DNA from: Iphione sp. A-MEVVRFRX5
Lineage: Eukaryota
Assembly: GCA_976226885.1 (NCBI GenBank)
Contig: OZ320316.1
Span: forward strand, 117,304,001-117,368,000
Direction of reading: 5' to 3'
DNA: 64,000 bases
Shown: piece after piece, positions 12,540 through 30,799 of the stretch
Layout of the letters: each line of letters begins with the position of its first letter
How positions within the stretch are numbered: the first letter of the stretch is position 1
Notes under the pieces: generated by a model
Database searches by the model: none
What the model was told of the DNA's origin: nothing
Seen by the model: only the letters and a program-made list of their open reading frames with translations
Position numbers and translations under genes: made by a program

Positions 12540-12680
12540 GTGAGATACATAATCTCGTGCTTGGCTGTATGGGAAACATACCCACGGCTTGCAGTAGTCA
12601 CACTCGGCTGCGCCTCGTGTGCTACTGCAAGCCGTGGGTATATTTCCCATACAGCCACGCACTCGTTATGTATCTATCAC
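12540..12680. repeat. 141-bp near-perfect hairpin with centre ACTCGGCTGCGCCTCGTG
   Basis: Arms AGATACATAA/TTATGTATCT, TGGCTGTATGGGAAA/TTTCCCATACAGCCA, ATACCCACGGCTTGCAGTAG/CTACTGCAAGCCGTGGGTAT. Confidence 0.93.
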
Positions 12681-12839
12681 TAAAACCTCTACCAACACCT
12701 TAGACAATGAATAACCCTCCAAACGCTCTGTTAGGGAGTAGTGGTCGCCCTAAAACCTCTACTAACACCTTAGACAATGAATAACCCTCCAAACGCTCTG
12801 TTAGGAAGTAGTGGTCGCCCTAAAACCTCTAGGTATGCA

Positions 12840-13574: not shown

Positions 13575-13995
13575 AGTACCCACATCAAGGGTCACTCTAG
13601 GGGGACTGAGCCTAATCCACATACCGACACTAGGAACCCACATCAACGCTCACTATAGGGGGACTGAGACTACACCACATACTGACACTAGGTACCCACA
13701 TCAACGGTCACTCTAGGGGGACTGGGCCTGCACCACATACGACACTAGGCACCCACATCAACGCTCACTCTAGGGGGACTGAGCCTACTGCACATACCGA
13801 CACTAGGTACCCACATCAAGGGTCACTCTAGGGGGACTGAGCCTACTGCACATACCCACACTAGGTACCCACATCAACGCTCACTCTAGACGACTGAGCC
13901 TACACCACATACCGACACTAGGTACCCACATCAACGCTCACTATAGGGGGATTGAGCCTACTCCACATACCTACAGTAACCACAACAAGGGTCAC
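13575..13995. repeat. 58-bp minisatellite next to the exon 3 acceptor
   Basis: CCCACATCAA recurs at 13579, 13637, 13695, 13752, 13810, 13868, 13925. Confidence 0.95.
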
Positions 13996-14290
13996 TCTAG
14001 GGCTTCTTTAACTATAGACTGCTCCTCTCCCGCTTGTGTGTAGGGCCAAGCTCGGCTGACTGCTTGGTCTGGTGAGGGTTATCTCACGTTCTGTGCTTGT
14101 AAACGGTACTGTTTAGTGGTGAATAGTTATGTTTTATCCATTTGTAAACTGTTGTAACTCGTGGTGTTGAGTATAGTTCTCATGCTTTGATTCTAAACCA
14201 TACTCAATGGGGATAGCAGGCGTAAGGGTCTTTCATTCTCTAATCTTACACTGTATACAGTTAAGGTGTGCAAGGGAGTGCGGTACTCAC

Positions 14291-14440
14291 TGGTGGTGCT
14301 GAGAGAGTAGCTGTCGTTGACCTGGATCTTCTGTGAGTTGGCGTCCAGCTTGATCTGTTGTTCCGACTCTGAGTTTTGGTTCATGATCTCATAACTGAAC
14401 GTGGATCTCATGTCTGGTGAGGTGTCGTCAAATATTGCGC
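14291..14440 (-). CDS. GRIA-like: gene A exon 2 (GAIFDDTSPDMRSTFSYEIM...NDSYSLSTT)
   Basis: TTTGACAG acceptor, A|GTGAGT donor, 150 nt phase 1-1; GAIF...DSY motif of iGluR ATD. Confidence 0.92.
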
Positions 14441-14459
14441 CTGTCAAAGGGAGAAGACC

Positions 14460-14785
14460 ACGGTGATTCACAAGAAGGGCAGGGTGACTCACAAGATGGG
14501 CAGGGTGATTCACAAGAAGGGCAGGGTGATTCACAAGAAGGGCAGGGTGATTCACAAGACGGGCAGGATGGTTCACAAGACGGGCAGGGTGGTTCACAAG
14601 AAGGCCAGGGTGATTCACAAGACAGGCAGGGTGATTCACAAGAAGGGCAGGGTGATTCACAAGACGGGCAGGGTGATTCACAAGATGGGCAGGGTGATTC
14701 ACAAGAAGGGCAGGGTGATTCACAAGATGGGCAGGGTGATTCACGAGAAGGCCAGGGTGGTTCACACCGAGGCCAGGGTGGTTCA
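14460..14785. repeat. 21-bp minisatellite next to the exon 2 acceptor
   Basis: Unit GATTCACAAGAAGGGCAGGGT. Confidence 0.97.
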
Positions 14786-15239
14786 CAGTATGAAAAGCAA
14801 GAACAATCTGTAAACCTCTCATCTCTTAAACTCTAGGTAGTATAGGAGTTGGGGATATGGGGAAGGAAGCACAGGTGGGAGAAGTAGTAGATCGCAAGTA
14901 GTATAATGTGCAGGCAAGGGTACGGCCTTCAATATTTGATTCGTCTATATGATAAGCCCTACTAATTCTTAGTCTCTCTGACCTGAACCATTGTCCTACT
15001 CTCTGTATACCGTACTTTAATCTTCAGTCTATGACTTGTTTATAACCTGTATACTCACCCTCAATCTCTATAAGCTTTCTCCTCGTCAGTCTCTACCTCA
15101 CCCTCGAGTCTGTATATAACAGCCCTATTGTCTGTTTAAGCTTCAACTATTCCTTATCAGTCTAAACCTGGTCATAGGCTCTGTACACACCATTCCTCCC
15201 CCCAACTCTATTATGTATCCCTCTTCAGGGAATGCCTCA

Positions 15240-16085
15240 CCATATGCTCTGTATACTCATATTACCTGGATTTCTGTAAAATCATACTGCTCAGCAGTCA
15301 CAGCCTTACCATATACTCCCTTTACTATCAGCCGCTTGTTCTCTGCATCACCTTATCTATCCCTCATCAGTCTAAGCCTTACCTTATACTCCCTTTACTA
15401 TCAGCCGCTTGTTCTCTGCATCACCTTATCTCTCGACAATCTGACGCTTATCTTATACTCCATTTACTATCAGCCCCTTGTTCTCTGCATCACCTTATCT
15501 ATCCCTCATCAATCTAACCCTTACCTTATACTCCCTTTACTATCAGCCGCTTGTTCTCTGCATCACCTTATCTCTCGGCAATCTGACGCTTATCTTATAC
15601 TCCATTTACTATCAGCCCCTTGTTCTCTGCATCACCTTATCTCTCGACAATCTGACACTTGCCTTATACTCTCTTTACTATCAGCCCCTTGTTCTCTGCA
15701 TCACCTTATCTCTCGCCAATCTGACGCTTACCTTATACTCCATTTACTATCAGCCCCATGTTCTCTCTATCAACTTACCTATCCCTCTTCAGTCTAAGCC
15801 TTACCTTATACTTCATTTACCCTCAGTCCCCTGTTCTCTGTATCACCTTATCTATCCCTCTTCAGTCTAAGCCTTGCAATATACTCCATTTACTATGAGC
15901 CCCATGTTCTCTGTATCAACTTACCTATCCCTCCTCAGTCTAAGCCTTGCCTTATACTCCATTTACTATCAGCCCCTTGTCCTGTGCATCACCTTATCTA
16001 ACCCTCGTAAATCTAACCATTACAATATACTCCATTTACTATCAGCCAATTGTTCTCTGCATCACCTTCTCTATCCCTCGTCAGG
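15240..16085. repeat. Composite about 60-70-bp minisatellite
   Basis: Recurring CCTTATACTCCATTTACTATCAGCCCCTTGTTCTCTGCATCACCTTATCT. Confidence 0.9.
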
Positions 16086-16102
16086 CTAGACATTATCATA
16101 TA

Positions 16103-23699: not shown

Positions 23700-24510
23700 C
23701 TCGGTTCAGCGTAAACCTTACACATCTGCTCGCTGACGCTAGTGCTGAGCTGCTCCGCCATCTGCCTCCCTACCATCTGCGCTCTGGCCTCCTGCTCCCC
23801 TGCCATCTGCCCACACTGCTGCTGCGGGTAATGTTGAGTGATGTCGTGTCTCTACAATGTTCGCATGGGATGTTGATGAGGAGGCAGAGAAGAGGGAGAA
23901 AGGGGGGGGGGGCGCCAGAAGAGAGGCAGGAATGGGAGTGAGGGGAGGAGGACCCAAACTCTGTCTGCGGCCACTGTTAAAAGTGCATAATTTATGTTAA
24001 TGTGAGGGTCCCGCGCACCTCCGCAGACGCCGTGCGCAGCTCCCCCCTCCCCTCTCCCTCCCCCTGCCTCCCCCTCCCCCTCCCCCCTCCCCCGGCGAGC
24101 AGCTGCTGGGTCTCCGCGGTGTGTGCAGATGGCCAGCTGCTCGCTCTTTAAGAAGCAGGTGCTGGTGTCGCCGGCTGTCCTCCACCTCCTCCTCCTCCCC
24201 TCGTCCTCCTCCTCGTCCTGCTCCTAGCTGCAGTGATGGCGATGGTGATGAGCCTGTAATGGTAAGGACCCCCCCACCCCCACCCCCGCCCCACCCGTCC
24301 TCCCATACCACAGCCTGGGCCTGGAGCACACATATTCGAGTTATATACACCGCCGTGTACAAACAAACATAGAACATGTCCGCCCTCTCCCTCACCTTCA
24401 GGTAAAACGCTGAAATATCCCCGAACTCCTGGTCGCGCTTCCCTGGGATAGGTTTAAATAGTACAGGATAACAGAGAGAGACGGAGGGGGAGTCCGTTTA
24501 TAAATAGCTA
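23700..24510. promoter_or_regulatory. Second GC-rich block upstream of gene A; candidate distal promoter or non-coding first exon
   Basis: CATCTG E-box cluster 23723-23809; AT box TTTATAAATA at 24497-24506; minus-strand donor-like GAAG|GTGAGG at 24395. Confidence 0.35.
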
Positions 24511-24704
24511 ATGACCGACACATTTGTCATGCCTCGCTCTTACACAAGGCCCTTCATGTTTCTTTGTGTTCTCTAAATGCGGCCAGGCTCTTTATTTTTG
24601 ACGAGGTGACAGTTAATGTTTTTTTTCGATCTACAACAGCAGTGCTCTAGTTGCTAAAAATGTCAAGAACCAACGCCACCCTTCCGACCCTAACATATAA
24701 CCAA

Positions 24705-24744
<40 letters not shown>

Positions 24745-25296
24745 TGGGATGGGGGCTAATTATATCCGCTCTGTAAAAGCCGCAATGAGAACCAAACTCC
24801 TACGATTGTTGTATTTGTCAAAGCTAATTGGTGTAACTACACATCATGGCGTGCTGCCCACCAATGCATACAGAAACGCACACCACAAGCAAACTACAGT
24901 AAGACGGAAGAGAAGAGGAAGACGTCTCTACTCCCTACATTTGATGTACAGTCATACAATAAGTTATTGATTGTTTTTTATGAGATGATTCGGATATTCA
25001 TGTTTTTGTCGTCGGTAAGTATACTTGAGATACATCCCTTGGTACAGGTGTAAGTCATAATAATCTCATGATTAGTCCGTACTTGTTAGCCTTTATGCAA
25101 TGAGCATGTAAGAATACATTGTCCGTTTTGATTTGTAACGAACATTAAACTACCCCTACAACCCCTCTCTCTCTATGTTCCTACCATCCCCCCGAGCCCG
25201 TTATATCGCGTAATAGTCTCAGTCGTTCTCTGTTATTTTGAGTGTGTTGTTGTCGTTTTTCTTGTGTTTACGCTATGGTTCAGTGCATTTTTAGCT

Positions 25297-25371
25297 GTCT
25301 GCGGCCGGTTTCGAACCCGGGTCCGTCGTGTCCGTAGAGGTTGGCGCTCTTACCGACTGCGCCACGAAGTC
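25297..25371 (-). ncRNA. tRNA-derived Pol III promoter cassette (degenerate cloverleaf) at the Crypton 3' end
   Basis: A-box TGGCGCAGTCGG, GCGC/GCGC D-stem, B-box GGTTCGAAACC; no pairing anticodon stem, so not a functional tRNA. Confidence 0.65.
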
Positions 25372-25467
25372 TAGTCAATGAACTGGCCAATTGTACTGAT
25401 CTTATGTAGTTGTTTTTTGATTATATATGTAAAGAATAAGACTTCTTCAACTGTCACTGTTTATTTC

Positions 25468-26720
25468 TCAAGGAAATTGCATTGCATATTTGACTTTGTT
25501 TTTTTTTATGATGACAAGTTTAACCTCCTCTGGTATAGAAATGGTTATAGTAGCTTTTTCACGTCGAGGTCTTGTTTCTTGTTGTAGAACCCTGTCTGCA
25601 GCTCGGATTTCTTCCTCATCTGAGAGATCGAGGCCAAGATCTAATGTTGGTTGTTCCACTGGTATGCTGATTGGTGGTCGTGGTGGTCTTGGTTGCGGCT
25701 CTCTAGGAGTTGAAGCCATTTGTGGTGTGGAGACAATATTGGTTGATGATGGTGGCCCTTGTGGAACCTCTTGAACTACCCTGGAGACCTTTGGTGGGCG
25801 AATTTCCTCTGCTGTGGGAGGTGGGCGAATTTCCTCTGCTGTGGGAGGTGGCTCGGTGACAGTGGTTGCAGGTGTATCCGAGACAGTGCTAGGCAATGGT
25901 GGTTGTAGAGCATCAGAAATTTGATGTTGGAGGGATTCATTTACTCTCTTGTATGCCCTGATAGCAGAAGATTTATGACCACTGCGAGTGGCAATTGCTT
26001 GGTCATCTAAATTGGCTTCATAGAGGCGGGTACATAAGGTAGCTTTACCGCTATGCCCTGTAATATTACGACCCTCCATATTGATACCCGCCTCTATGCA
26101 CATCCTAGGCAAATACTTCTCTAGTGTATGTTGCCCTATCGGCTGCATACTGAAAGATATTTTTCCCAATAAGTTTGGCATGGGGCGCCTATAAAATCGT
26201 CCCAATTCTGGAATGTGATTGAGATATTTCTTAAAAAATGCTACAAGACATCGTGGGTGTCCAGGCTTGCTGAAATGGCGTACAAAACGAGGCTTCGATG
26301 TACAGTCTAGGGCGCCTGTTATTGTTTTTGCTAGTCGTCCGTGATATGTAATAAATTCACGGTTGTCATCCCCAACCCCTAGAGTGAATTGATTAGCCTC
26401 TAGATGCAAATGCTCATCTTTCGCCCGAAAACCAAAGAGCTTGCAGTTATAGAAATACACTCCATAACTAAGCCCTTTAGCTGTCTGATCATTAATCACC
26501 CCCGAATCCCACAATCTTTGTTCATCTGATGGAGTAATTATATCAGCTCTTCTCGTGTGTACCCCTAAACCCTCTGCTATCAATTCTTTTCGACGAGCGT
26601 CAAGGGCATCACGAAAGGTTTTGAAAAATGGATCTTGTTTTTTAAGTAACCACACATCCCGTTTGCCTAGCACGTCTCTGATATAGCGCTGGAGACCAGC
26701 AGCTATGTTGGTGAGAGAAC
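25468..26720 (-). CDS. Crypton YR exon 3, catalytic domain (GSLTNIAAGLQRY...FGFR...FYRRP...GHSGKAT...SGHKSSAIRAYKR...)
   Basis: TATTTTGCAG acceptor, phase 1; total CDS 1779 nt = 592 aa with no internal stop; R...HxxK...H...Y recombinase-type residues. Confidence 0.9.
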
Positions 26721-26908
26721 CTGCAAAATACAAAGAATTCACTCTGGTATAGCAATTGGAACAAAAATATTATAATACAATTGATTAGCAATTGGAACAA
26801 TAATATTATAATACAATTGATTTTGTAAAATGTTTTTTTTGGTTGGACATAATACTATTGTTCAGGTTTAAGGCATATTGCATATTTTTACAGACGCCAA
26901 ATGTTTAC

Positions 26909-27262
26909 CAGGAGGATACGGAGTGCCATCTTTCTTGGATATTTCAGTTATGAAATGCGCCAACCAATAGTCCAGAAGATATAAATCGCTATGATCTAAG
27001 AAGGGCGCCGGCCAGTTCACATCCTCTTGACTATCTTGATGCCAATTTCTCCATTTGCGCCATTCTCTGTATATGTCGACTGCCCACTGGCTAGCATGTT
27101 TTGTATTTTTTGGAATTCGCTTCTGGATTCTAGCCTTCAGCTCATCCTCTGTATGCACAGTCTTGAATCGCCCTGGATTTGTAGGAGGCTCGATGGTTTG
27201 TGGCTCGATGGTTTGTGGCGGACAAGCTGGTAGAGACGGTGGTTGCACTCTGGCTTGGTTTT
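26909..27262 (-). CDS. Crypton YR exon 2 (ENQARVQ...RIPKNTKHASQWAVDIYREWRKWRN...LDYWLAHFITEISKKDGTPYPP)
   Basis: GTTCTCCAG acceptor, G|GTAAAC donor, 354 nt phase 1-1; IP.NT...WA...W and F..E..K.DG.PYPP typical of Crypton/ZMYM-type YR N-domain. Confidence 0.85.
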
Positions 27263-27398
27263 CTGGAGAACACAAAGTGAAATGATATAACATAAGAAAT
27301 ATTATTTTCTAAATTTTTGACCATGTTACCAACTGAACCAAATTTCCCTATACCAATACATAATGTTACTATTTTTTATATTATTAAGCAATACCTAC

Positions 27399-27570
27399 CC
27401 TGAGTTTCGGTTTGAAGCGCTGATCGGAGAAGAGCATTGTCACTGTCTTCTATCGGAAAATCGTCACCAGCACCTTCTGCTGACGGATAATTTGATATAA
27501 TTTCTGTTTGGGATAAAGTGCTTTCATCCAAACGAGAAGATTCAGCCTGCGAAGTATACTGTTCAGACAT
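27399..27570 (-). CDS. Crypton YR exon 1 (MSEQYTSQAESS...LQTETQ)
   Basis: ATG at 27570, CAGG|GTAGGT donor, 172 nt phase 1; acidic low-complexity N-terminus. Confidence 0.7.
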
Positions 27571-28105
27571 GATGCTTCAATGGAGTTGTGTCTTCTGCAG
27601 AGGTCGTATCGAAATACAAAGTAATCGTTATAGATTTGTGCTTTTTATACAAACCTGGCGGACTTCAATGGAACCTCTTCTGCCAAAATTACAAATTGGT
27701 AGTTTCTATAATCACCCCAATGTATCTTGATCGATTTTCACCAGTACACCTGAGTGATTTTACAATTGAATTCTTACATAACAATTCGCTCGGCCGCAGT
27801 AGAATTATGGTGCCCAATTGTCTAGGGGCCCTTGCCAAATTACTTCCAACACCCAAAAACCTTCTAGACTTTTACTTCAAACGTACCAAAACCTTGTAGA
27901 CTTTTACTTAAAACGTACAAAAACCTTCTAGACTTCATCTCCCAACATACAAAAACCTTGTAGACTTTTACTTCAAACGTACAAAAACCTTCTAGACTTC
28001 AACTCCCAATTTACTTTAAAAGCCACCTCGTCTATCGACTCGGTGGACCAATGCTTCTTGACTGGGTCGGCACATCGTACAGTTGTAGGGGGGGGTAGTT
28101 TAAAT

Positions 28106-28211
28106 TAGATAAGGTACCTCGTCCTCATCGTTACGGGCATAATAATACACTCGTCGCTCCGCGAAGCTCGTGTATTATAGCCCGTAACGATTCGGACTCG
28201 TACCTTATCTA
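28106..28211. repeat. Terminal hairpin of the Crypton element
   Basis: Nested arms TAGATAAGGTAC/GTACCTTATCTA, ATCGTTACGGGC/GCCCGTAACGAT, TAATACAC/GTGTATTA around the centre ACTCGTCGCTCCGCGAAGCTCGTG. Confidence 0.9.
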
Positions 28212-28559
28212 CTACATATTTAGGTGTTTGATATGTATTACTTGTTCGCTTTTTTTGTCAACACAATATTATTGCTACTGACTTTTTAGGTAATGTGAAA
28301 TTATCACCTTCTGCTTAGCATTTAATGAAACGATTTGTAACGGTTTAATTAAGACTTGCTTACATTGTTCTAATGTTCTCACTTTATCAGCTTCTACTGT
28401 GTCGTCCCAGCCCTTAGTGGAGTGAGTGCCTCCTAATCTTTAACTGCAAGATAATATGGAGGCTTATCTGGCTGTTCATGCTGTGAAGATACGGTATGGT
28501 ATTCCAGATGATGACAATATGTTAATGTAACTGTAGAGATTCCAAGATGGTGATAGTAT

Positions 28560-28920
28560 ACTGGCAAAACTGGATGGTGTCCTGGATAGTGACAGCATAG
28601 GGATGTAACTGGATGGTGTCCTGGATAGTGCCGGCATAGGGATGTAACTGGATGGTGTCCTGGATAGTGCCAGCATAGGGATGTAACTGGATGGTGTCCT
28701 GGATAGTGCCAGCATAGGGATGTAACTGGATGGTGTCCTGGATAGTGCCAGCATAGGGATGTAACTGGATGGTGTTCTGGATAGTGCCGGCATAGGGATG
28801 TAACTGGATGGTGTCCTGGATAGTGCCAGCATAGGGATGTAACTGGATGGTGTCCTGGATAGTGACAGCATAGGGATGTAACTGGATAGTGTCCTGGATA
28901 GTGACAACATAGAGACATAA
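28560..28920. repeat. 39-bp minisatellite
   Basis: Unit GTAACTGGATGGTGTCCTGGATAGTGCCAGCATAGGGAT. Confidence 0.96.
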
Positions 28921-30799
28921 CTGGCTGACACGACATACAGAAAACTGAACTTACCAGTGGTCTGGTAGTGCATCAACAGAGTTTCAATGACAACTCTTGC
29001 TTGTGTTTTGTCTGTCCAACTCAATCCTGTGCTTTATCATTGATGACTTGTGTTAATGTGTGCAAAACTCCTGGTGTCCTTGGCTGCCTGTAGGGAGGAG
29101 GATTCGTATGTGCCTCTGTGGGAGTCGGTTTCAGCATAGTGAAATGTGTTTGAATCCGTTTATGTAGTCCCATTTGTTAATAAAACATGCACCCCAATCA
29201 TCCCTAAGATTTGACCTTAGGCTGTGTTCAACTATATCTGGATTTTTCTGTTTCATGTCCAGAGCCAGATGCAGAGATTTTCCGAGCCTATACTAATCCA
29301 TTGTTGGTGTTTCCATGTCCGCATGCAGGTGCAGAGTTTTATTCATCCCACATGGAAACAATCCAGACCCCGACGCAGATTCCCATAGAAGGCACTGGTT
29401 AAGAGACATCTGCATACCATACGGTGGCAATTAAAATCACAAAACAGCAGGAGGTACCTCTGCGTCCGCACATGGGTGCGGATTTTTTGTCCGTTTAAAT
29501 GTGAACAGTGCCTTACCCCCACGGCAAGTACCGGGTACACAAGGATAGTGGTTGACATTGCCCACCTCGACCACACACATTCCTTATAGGTCACCAGTCA
29601 ATCTCTTCTGGCCCAGTCTCCACCACAGCACGCTAGATAATAGATGGAGACCACCCTTCCACTAATATACTAGCATTACCCACGGGTGTCCCTCCTCCCC
29701 TCCTTCAGTCTCAGGGCTGTAGCAAGTGACCTATGGTCATCAGATGCCTGCTCTAGGTCGAGGTCATACCGGCTGACATTTGGCATTTATTAAGGAAATC
29801 CTCCGAGCCTCGAGGGATGAGCTAACAATATCAAGGTCTTCACAGCATACCTGTCACCTGCCAATGCTGGGGACTCCAGCAACACCCTGCTGTCACAAGT
29901 AGGCTGTGACTACTGTCAGAGCAAATCACCATAAGTGGCTCTTCCGGCATCAGTATCTGTCACGGCAAACCGGGTCTAGTGGCTGTCATTTCAGTACACG
30001 TACTACGGTCTTTAGTTTCTGTCAATTCTGGTAAAACCAACGCTCACATGAACCTCCACTTCGCTGTACTTATTAATGCCAGTGGTCTCTGTCCCTGCCA
30101 TTCCTGCGCTGGTTCTCTGTTGTGAGAGCTGTCACTGCCTGCTGTCACTGCCTGCTGTCACCGCCTGCTGTCAGTGCTAACCAGGGTGACACTACTAAGG
30201 GCATTTCTAGCTTAATTTATTGACGAAATACTGGAGGCTGGAAATACCACTACACTCAGAAACTCCCGAAAGTGTTGTTTAAATCAATCCTGAGATGTGT
30301 AAGTCGTGTCACGGGGGCAGCGCAACGCCCTCTCCTGGCTCAAATGCAGGTCACGTGTATTGCTTTATGTCCCACGTGACCACGGCTCTAAGTCAGAAAG
30401 GAAAACCGCTTCCTTTCATCTATCGAGTTTCCGGAAATCGTAGGGAGAGAAGAGTAGGAAATATGCTGAATTTGCTAAAAATGGTTCCTATGGCAACCAG
30501 ATTCGTATTTAAAGACATGGCCTCTCCCTAATTAATCCTTACACTTTAGTCTTATACATCAGCAGACGCTCGGACAGAAAATGGCTAGTCCCGACTGGCG
30601 TGGATTCTAATACTGAACACTATCCTTCTATGTGTCCGGCTTGTTCCAGGCATGAGCCGTATTCCTCTTCTGCCATTCTGATGTGTTAACTGTGCATCTC
30701 CCGCATCCATGTATTCTATCTCTATCTGAATTCCTCTCCTGGACCGCTGTCCCCTTGCACTCCTTGTCCCCATCCCTTACCCCTCATAACAATCACACC

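Follow-up and report, generated by a model that had tools for sequence, protein, structure and literature searches.

The window analysed here, a stretch of 64,000 nucleotides from Iphione sp. A-MEVVRFRX5 (assembly GCA_976226885.1, contig OZ320316.1, positions 117,304,001 to 117,368,000), contains on its minus strand, at 25145-28215, a structurally complete, autonomous DNA transposon of the CryptonA type, hereafter element 1, whose sole gene encodes a tyrosine recombinase. The element is 3,071 bp long, with boundaries good to about 4 bp, and carries a subterminal inverted repeat of 17-21 nt together with a terminal hairpin of 112 nt, in contrast to the published view that terminal repeats are not found in animal Cryptons (Kojima and Jurka, 2011; PMC3212892). 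As a whole, the observations are probably best explained by a CryptonA element with asymmetric ends, which recombines conservatively within a short core, uses the hairpin as a cis-element and works through a folded sense strand. Read in gene orientation, it opens with the 112-nt hairpin, continues through TTAAA, a 17-nt repeat (X) and five 32-bp repeats to the gene, and closes with X inverted and TTTAA, as follows:

28104-28215, minus strand: 5'-terminal hairpin, a 112-nt imperfect palindrome; on the sense strand it is capped by a GGA triloop, and its stem is interrupted by two tandem G·A mismatch loops
28082-28103, minus strand: internal site, consisting of the core TTTAA (28099-28103) and repeat X (28082-28098), with the sequence GTTGTAGGGGGGGGTAGTTTAA
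27840-28009, minus strand: five 32-bp subterminal tandem repeats, located between X and the gene
27399-27570, minus strand: exon 1, with the ATG at 27570, an acidic N-terminus and an LSQ motif common to relatives
26909-27262, minus strand: exon 2, with an N-terminal QRICH1-like (core-binding-like) domain and a weak Pfam match to the QRICH1 N-domain
25468-26720, minus strand: exon 3, with the tyrosine-recombinase catalytic domain, a Pro-rich tail and a conserved C-terminal motif
25297-25372, minus strand: degenerate tRNA-like piece 3' of the gene, with B-box-like GGTTCGAAACC and A-box-like TGGCGCAGTCGG
25200-25216, minus strand: 3' subterminal motif, TACGCGATATAAC on the sense strand, of TACGCGATAT type, which recurs in relatives both within the hairpin arm and in the 3' region
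25145-25162, minus strand: 3' terminus in gene orientation, consisting of X' (25150-25162) and the core TTAAA (25145-25149), with the left end TTAAACTACCCCTACAAC

The gene has three exons joined by GT-AG introns of fitting phase, and splice-site enumeration with translation gave a 1,779-nt frame that encodes 592 aa with zero stops. The exon 2/3 junction, PYPPG/SLTNIAAGLQRY, agrees with the uninterrupted protein P0007 of Ptychodera flava. Exon 3 matches the Pfam models DUF3504 (3.9e-16) and Phage_integrase (8e-7), both beyond the curated cut-offs. The intact, spliced Crypton recombinase proposed by an earlier sequence-only reading of this DNA was thus borne out, at the level of the gene model as well as in the hidden Markov model search which that reading had suggested. 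The protein is a CryptonA-type tyrosine recombinase. Alignment to ten relatives and lambda integrase located the catalytic positions at R98, K131, H222, K225, H248 and Y256 (exon-3 numbering), and R98, K131, H222, H248 and Y256 are kept. The closest solved structure by sequence is that of QRICH1. No other enzyme was detected: in the open reading frame list for 24500-28800 only recombinase exons exceed 110 aa inside the element bounds, Pfam returned the recombinase only, and element 1 contains neither a DDE gene nor, among DIRS-like features, a reverse transcriptase open reading frame or Pfam match.

The coding sequence has two further peculiarities. Perfect in-frame tandem duplications lie at 25793-25851 (27 bp, 2.2 copies) and 27187-27219 (15 bp, 2.2 copies); they arose recently and did not disturb the reading frame. 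At the C-terminus (25471-25545), a motif of about 25 aa, I/L-x-I/V-x-V/I-P ... I-x-K-x-G-K, is conserved in relatives after the variable Pro-rich tail and belongs to no Pfam family.

The left boundary of element 1 was set where homology to the inner module of a second element in the window (element 2) ends, and the right boundary by aligning six hairpins. The sequence-only reading had seen that the left end recurs inverted at 28082-28103, and the two copies indeed correspond, TTAAACTACCCCTACAAC (25145-25162) and the inverse of GTTGTAGGGGGGGGTAGTTTAA (28082-28103) differing only in a run of C4 versus C8. The hairpin, which had been described as some 106 bp long and ending at 28213, is present but measures 112 nt and occupies 28104-28215. 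Since the hairpin is a palindrome, the internal succession of inner arm, TTAAA and X is an inverted copy of the junction that would form if the 3' end were joined to the 5' end, and the inverted repeat beside the hairpin, correctly noticed before, is better read as part of this copy of the joined ends. The same arrangement, with core and X beside the hairpin, occurs in element 2 and in the related loci L001, L002, L006, L010, L011 and L013.

How such elements insert can be read from element 2, which interrupts a satellite array and has intact units of that array on either side:

11545-12680, minus strand: element 2, a composite non-autonomous element within a 70-bp satellite
12540-12680, minus strand: hairpin of element 2, 141 nt
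12525-12539, minus strand: core and X of element 2, with CCGTGC-TTTAA at 12530-12539
11727-12521, minus strand: inner element-1-like module, with TTAAA-repeat ends, 33-bp repeats and a tRNA-like piece
11545-11726, minus strand: CACGG-type 3' tail of about 180 bp, with the left end TTAAA-GCACGG
12681-12831 and 11464-11544, no strand assigned: 70-bp satellite units, the empty-site references for element 2

An intact satellite unit reads GTCGCCC-TAAAA-CCTC, the left junction of element 2 reads GTCGCCC-TTAAA-GCACGG and the right junction reads ATCAC-TAAAA-CCTC. From this comparison it follows that the insert, 1,136 bp in length, includes the hairpin and arrived without target duplication; nothing was duplicated or lost, and CT(T/A)AAA is common to element and target. 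The crossover falls in this CT(T/A)AAA, which matches the prediction for a conservative tyrosine recombinase and bears out the earlier expectation that no DDE-type target duplication would be found. The three-part layout reported before at 11545-12680 is present in the outer parts of element 2, but the element is composite and its outer ends are of a CACGG-type subfamily different from that of element 1. Its hairpin, its X (of GCACGG type) and its 3' tail resemble the family of L002. Nested insertion, palindrome loss and chimera formation are candidate origins of the composite.

Comparison with relatives extends these ends well beyond the window. Altogether 11 hairpins were collected, from element 1, element 2 and the loci L001, L002, L003, L006, L007 and L010-L013, the hosts of the related hairpins being Ptychodera, Lingula, Branchiostoma, Mytilus, Ostrea and organisms represented by ENA contigs. 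In nine relatives the homologous hairpin precedes the recombinase gene. In L001 and L002 (from one ENA assembly) and L006 (from Ptychodera flava), for example, the 5' end is a homologous hairpin with core and X next to it, and X' and core come after the gene; the Lingula locus L007 has a short version of the hairpin. The eleventh example is intronic: within an intron of another Crypton (L003, 4318-4907) sits, in reverse orientation, a non-autonomous element of 590 bp that shares this hairpin and has TATA-CCACGG ends. Moreover, a model (R1) built from six hairpins was then tested on four newly fetched relatives, and it found a hairpin in every one of them (Branchiostoma lanceolatum, Mytilus edulis, Ostrea edulis and the ENA contig L013), located on the same strand as the gene at 75-480 bp before its start and with higher scores than on the opposite strand; matching X/X' repeats of 10-16 nt, with X' and core downstream, accompany it in three of these four loci.

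The six aligned hairpins share the invariant blocks GT-RR-TAGATA, ACGAGT and TATCT-N-A-Y-TTA, and elsewhere preserve pairing through sequence change. In this alignment 94% of cells are paired and 21 of 39 pairs show compensatory changes, a level reached in none of 500 shuffles (0/500), and pairing drops to about 35% when the partners are slid against each other. The hairpin is a conserved cis-element throughout this lineage and probably belongs to its recombination machinery. The core, by comparison, varies by family (TTAAA, TTATA, TTATC, TTGAA, TTAGA or TTTAG), and TTAAA is limited to the subfamily of element 1. Since the cores of relatives differ from TTAA, targeting is not of the piggyBac-like TTAA kind; of the earlier proposal that the inverted repeats surround a TTAA core, the repeats stand as parts of the element and TTAA as a general core falls. 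Several divergent paralogues with the same ends occur within one assembly.

The hairpins are also asymmetric between strands. Folded as DNA, the hairpin of element 1 reaches -34.4 kcal/mol (z = -10 relative to shuffled sequences). Five of the first six hairpins have CGAG opposite CGAG close to the base, which yields tandem G·A pairs, and a 2-nt bulge in GTGA-TA-GATA is conserved, a bulge after GTGA recurring in element 2 and L006. The apex is a G+C mini-stem of 2-6 bp, flanked by GA opposite GA and capped by GCA, GTA, GGA, GCCA, GTTA or GATA. A strict search for the apex motif (NN-GA-stem-G(N)NA-stem-GA-NN) recovered it on the sense strand of eight of the 11 hairpins and on the other strand of none (0/11), against a background of seven occurrences in the 64-kb window on both strands together; in element 1 the motif is interrupted by a 2-nt bulge. 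Furthermore, mismatches in the sense-strand stems are G·A (8), G·T (7) and G·G (2), versus C·T (2) and A·C (2), and folding energies favour the sense strand in all 11 hairpins with DNA parameters and in 10/10 folded with RNA parameters. This pattern persists though the stem sequences turn over. Given that tandem G·A pairs and G(N)NA loops always stand on the sense strand, the functional form is most likely that strand folded, and the asymmetry suggests that the folded single strand is the working form.

Movement might then proceed as follows. Element 1 has at its 5' end the hairpin (arms Y and Y', about 110 nt), then the A/T-rich core and X, and at its 3' end X inverted and the same core. In an excised circle, a form that has been proposed for Cryptons, the ends would be joined in the junction X'-core-Y, of which the internal Y'-core-X would be an inverted copy; the predicted junction consists of the 3' repeat, about 5 A/T bases and then the hairpin base GTAGTAGATA. 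Integration would be a conservative, site-specific crossover within the short core that leaves no target duplication, as seen in element 2 and as presumed for element 1, with X and the hairpin base probably flanking the crossover core as recombinase binding sites. The sense strand may fold on itself, and extruded or single-stranded DNA could in this way present a duplex site, as integron attC does. Alternatively, and not exclusively, the hairpin could serve as a splint that holds both termini, in the manner of the DIRS internal complementary region. Several copies have kept their introns, which argues against copying via spliced RNA. That the CryptonA lineage moves via a folded single DNA strand, the hairpin and the internal junction copy aligning the termini and presenting an attC-like site, is put forward tentatively, as a possibility rather than an expectation.

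Several explanations compete with all or part of this reading. The palindrome might work only as double-stranded DNA, never folding, with its arms as inverted arrays of binding sites for recombinase dimers or a host factor, comparable to the long inverted repeats on which FLP acts in the yeast 2-micron plasmid. Tyrosine recombinases normally use duplex sites with inverted arms, two inverted junction copies on a circle would permit inversion of the FLP kind, and TACGCGATAT recurs in the hairpin arm and the 3' subterminal region as a protein-binding site might. Yet the stem sequences vary freely between lineages while pairing is kept, and symmetry is invariably broken by purine-purine oppositions on the sense strand (CGAG/CGAG, GNA loops), never by the mirror image, which a two-fold symmetric duplex does not predict, and we consider a purely duplex role unlikely.

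A role as RNA, be it as structured leader, processing signal or small-RNA precursor, would require that the hairpin be transcribed from circles, tandem copies or by read-through. This idea gains from the favoured strand being the gene sense strand in 11/11 hairpins, from tandem G·A pairs and G-N-N-A loops being common in RNA also, and from strand energy gaps that are larger with RNA parameters (1.6-17 kcal/mol). It is nevertheless less likely still, given that the hairpin is outermost at the 5' end, so that a promoter inside the element cannot transcribe the hairpin of an integrated copy, and that the hairpin base adjoins the recombination core and X. The only Rfam match of the hairpins, to a microRNA family, was rejected, its 39 bits lying far below the 119-bit threshold.

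Two further alternatives concern the identity of the element. The gene could be a domesticated DUF3504 host gene of the ZMYM/QRICH1 kind, in keeping with the label "ZMYM2-like" that relatives bear in databases, with QRICH1 as the nearest solved structure and with the missing second catalytic Arg. Domesticated genes lose the Tyr (PMC3212892), whereas here Tyr, both His, the first Arg and Lys are kept; moreover, the gene lies between transposon ends that are also found on the non-autonomous element caught by the empty-site comparison, and divergent paralogues have the same ends, several of them in one assembly, so that domestication is very improbable. Scarcely credible is a piggyBac-like unit mobilised by a DDE enzyme with an unrelated foldback element landed beside it: both repeats of element 1 are bordered by TTAA, but the hairpin of element 2 lies inside the insert with no TTAA duplicated, the cores of relatives are not TTAA, there is no DDE gene, the hairpin is outside one repeat, and its position and orientation are constant in ten other elements.

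A number of observations nevertheless weigh against a mobile CryptonA element that acts through a folded hairpin, and they bear on different parts of it. With regard to the enzyme, the second Arg of the catalytic tetrad is replaced by Lys, namely K225 in an HSGK that is invariant in all ten aligned relatives and stands opposite R311 of lambda integrase. With regard to mobility, element 1 occurs just once within the 64-kb window, and the best database relatives (from Lingula, Ptychodera, Mytilus and large ENA contigs) are at most 60% identical. The two junctions of element 1 have just ACAT (4 bp) in common, not the TTAAA core, so that its crossover register is uncertain, and on either side of the copy in Ptychodera flava stands an 11-bp direct repeat, ACAGGATTTAC (L006, 4682-4692 and 6649-6659), which exceeds the usual overlap of a recombinase. 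As for the hairpin, some decayed relatives lack it, no hairpin was found within 5 kb for L004 or for the 5' end of L003 itself, and in element 2 the repeats of the inner module (11727-12521) come without any hairpin. The earlier description of the hairpin as a required terminal cis-element therefore holds for a conserved cis-element, attested by 11 hairpins, and is doubtful as to "required". As for the strand, some hairpins show little energy difference between strands with DNA parameters (0.2-1 kcal/mol in L006 and element 1), the hairpins share descent and are thus fewer than 11 independent observations, and the data fit single-stranded DNA, a cruciform or RNA alike.

Other features of the elements were noted as well. 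The 32-bp repeats of element 1, which have homologous 33-bp repeats in element 2 (12314-12400) and 59-bp repeats in the same place in L006, are candidate promoter or accessory binding sites. The motif TA(C/T)GCGA(T/A)AT, found both within the hairpin arm and some 55 nt short of the 3' end (L001 at 3087 and 6572; L003 at 4370, 4875 and 6370; L002 at 6344; the window at 25200-25216), is another candidate for accessory binding. A reversed CCAAT-like box, CTGATTGG, precedes the 3' repeat by 15-30 nt in four relatives (L006 at about 6615-6630, L010 at about 6405-6415, L013 at about 5790-5800 and L011 at about 7378); in a circle or tandem copy its position would be just upstream of the hairpin. L004 retains the 3' end motif. 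For L005 no hairpin was found on a contig that stops 94 bp upstream of the gene. The 3' piece of element 1 is called degenerate and tRNA-like only, as ARAGORN found no tRNA and Rfam nothing there; the inner module of element 2 has a sub-threshold Rfam tRNA match (14.7 bits). A metagenome scan with the conserved hairpin pattern gave two matches, both non-palindromic, which were rejected as due to chance.

The surroundings of element 1 are rich in satellites (28568-28924 and 13576-16088): at a distance of 350 bp from the right end begins a 39-bp minisatellite, with arrays of 58, 21 and 73 bp in the vicinity. The flanks of element 1 are unique in the window, which holds no empty site for it, and Pfam gave no informative matches to the large open reading frames of the window as regards host-gene context. 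An unrelated hairpin of 134 nt with a 45-bp stem (39 matches) lies at 6591-6724.

To our knowledge, Cryptons are the least understood class of eukaryotic DNA transposons, and we know of no transposition assay for them. Their recombinase gave rise to conserved vertebrate genes, namely ZMYM2-4, QRICH1 and KCTD1. A conserved end architecture, shared by relatives in molluscs, a brachiopod, an acorn worm and amphioxus, is a first concrete handle on how these elements move. Crypton ends were previously described as featureless; defined ends tell which DNA to assay and which circle junction to seek, and they single out the G·A loops, the GNA cap, the 2-nt bulge and the X repeats for mutation. If the strand asymmetry does reflect single-strand recombination, the mechanism of integrons and a cholera phage would extend to animals. 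The lineage would then provide the first eukaryotic DNA transposon shown with tyrosine recombination at a single-strand site and a structural bridge between Cryptons and DIRS retroelements, and the origin of the DIRS internal complementary region would be explained.

Among known systems, described CryptonA elements are alike in having a single DUF3504-type recombinase gene, a QRICH1-like N-domain, introns in some copies, non-autonomous derivatives, and no target-site duplication but short microhomology with the target. The lineage of element 1 differs from them in its terminal hairpin of 70-165 nt, its subterminal inverted repeat of 10-18 nt and its internal inverted copy of the joined ends. 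The 2026 Glomhopper paper on CryptonA describes Cryptons as devoid of inverted repeats and does not mention hairpins (PMC13465315), and no mention of hairpins or palindromes at Crypton ends was found in the literature covered, to which Repbase reports did not belong. The FLP system of the 2-micron plasmid likewise has a eukaryotic tyrosine recombinase and two inverted target sites on a circle, but its repeats are 599 bp long and far apart. Integron attC sites and the attP of CTX phage (PMC5027507; PMC4792948) resemble the hairpins of this lineage in combining an imperfect palindrome with a tyrosine recombinase, in favouring one strand, and in conserving extrahelical bases while the stem sequence varies. 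In comparison with attC, the hairpin of element 1 is eukaryotic, unrelated in sequence and much longer, and recombination of a single strand is in this case a conjecture. DIRS-1 also has a related tyrosine recombinase and an internal segment complementary to both termini side by side, as in a circle junction, a region that is indispensable and works on single-stranded intermediates (PMC7192593). Element 1 differs in having no reverse transcriptase, RNase H or methyltransferase and in keeping its introns, which points to copying of DNA and not of spliced RNA; furthermore, its complementary segment adjoins the 5' terminus and hence forms a hairpin with it.

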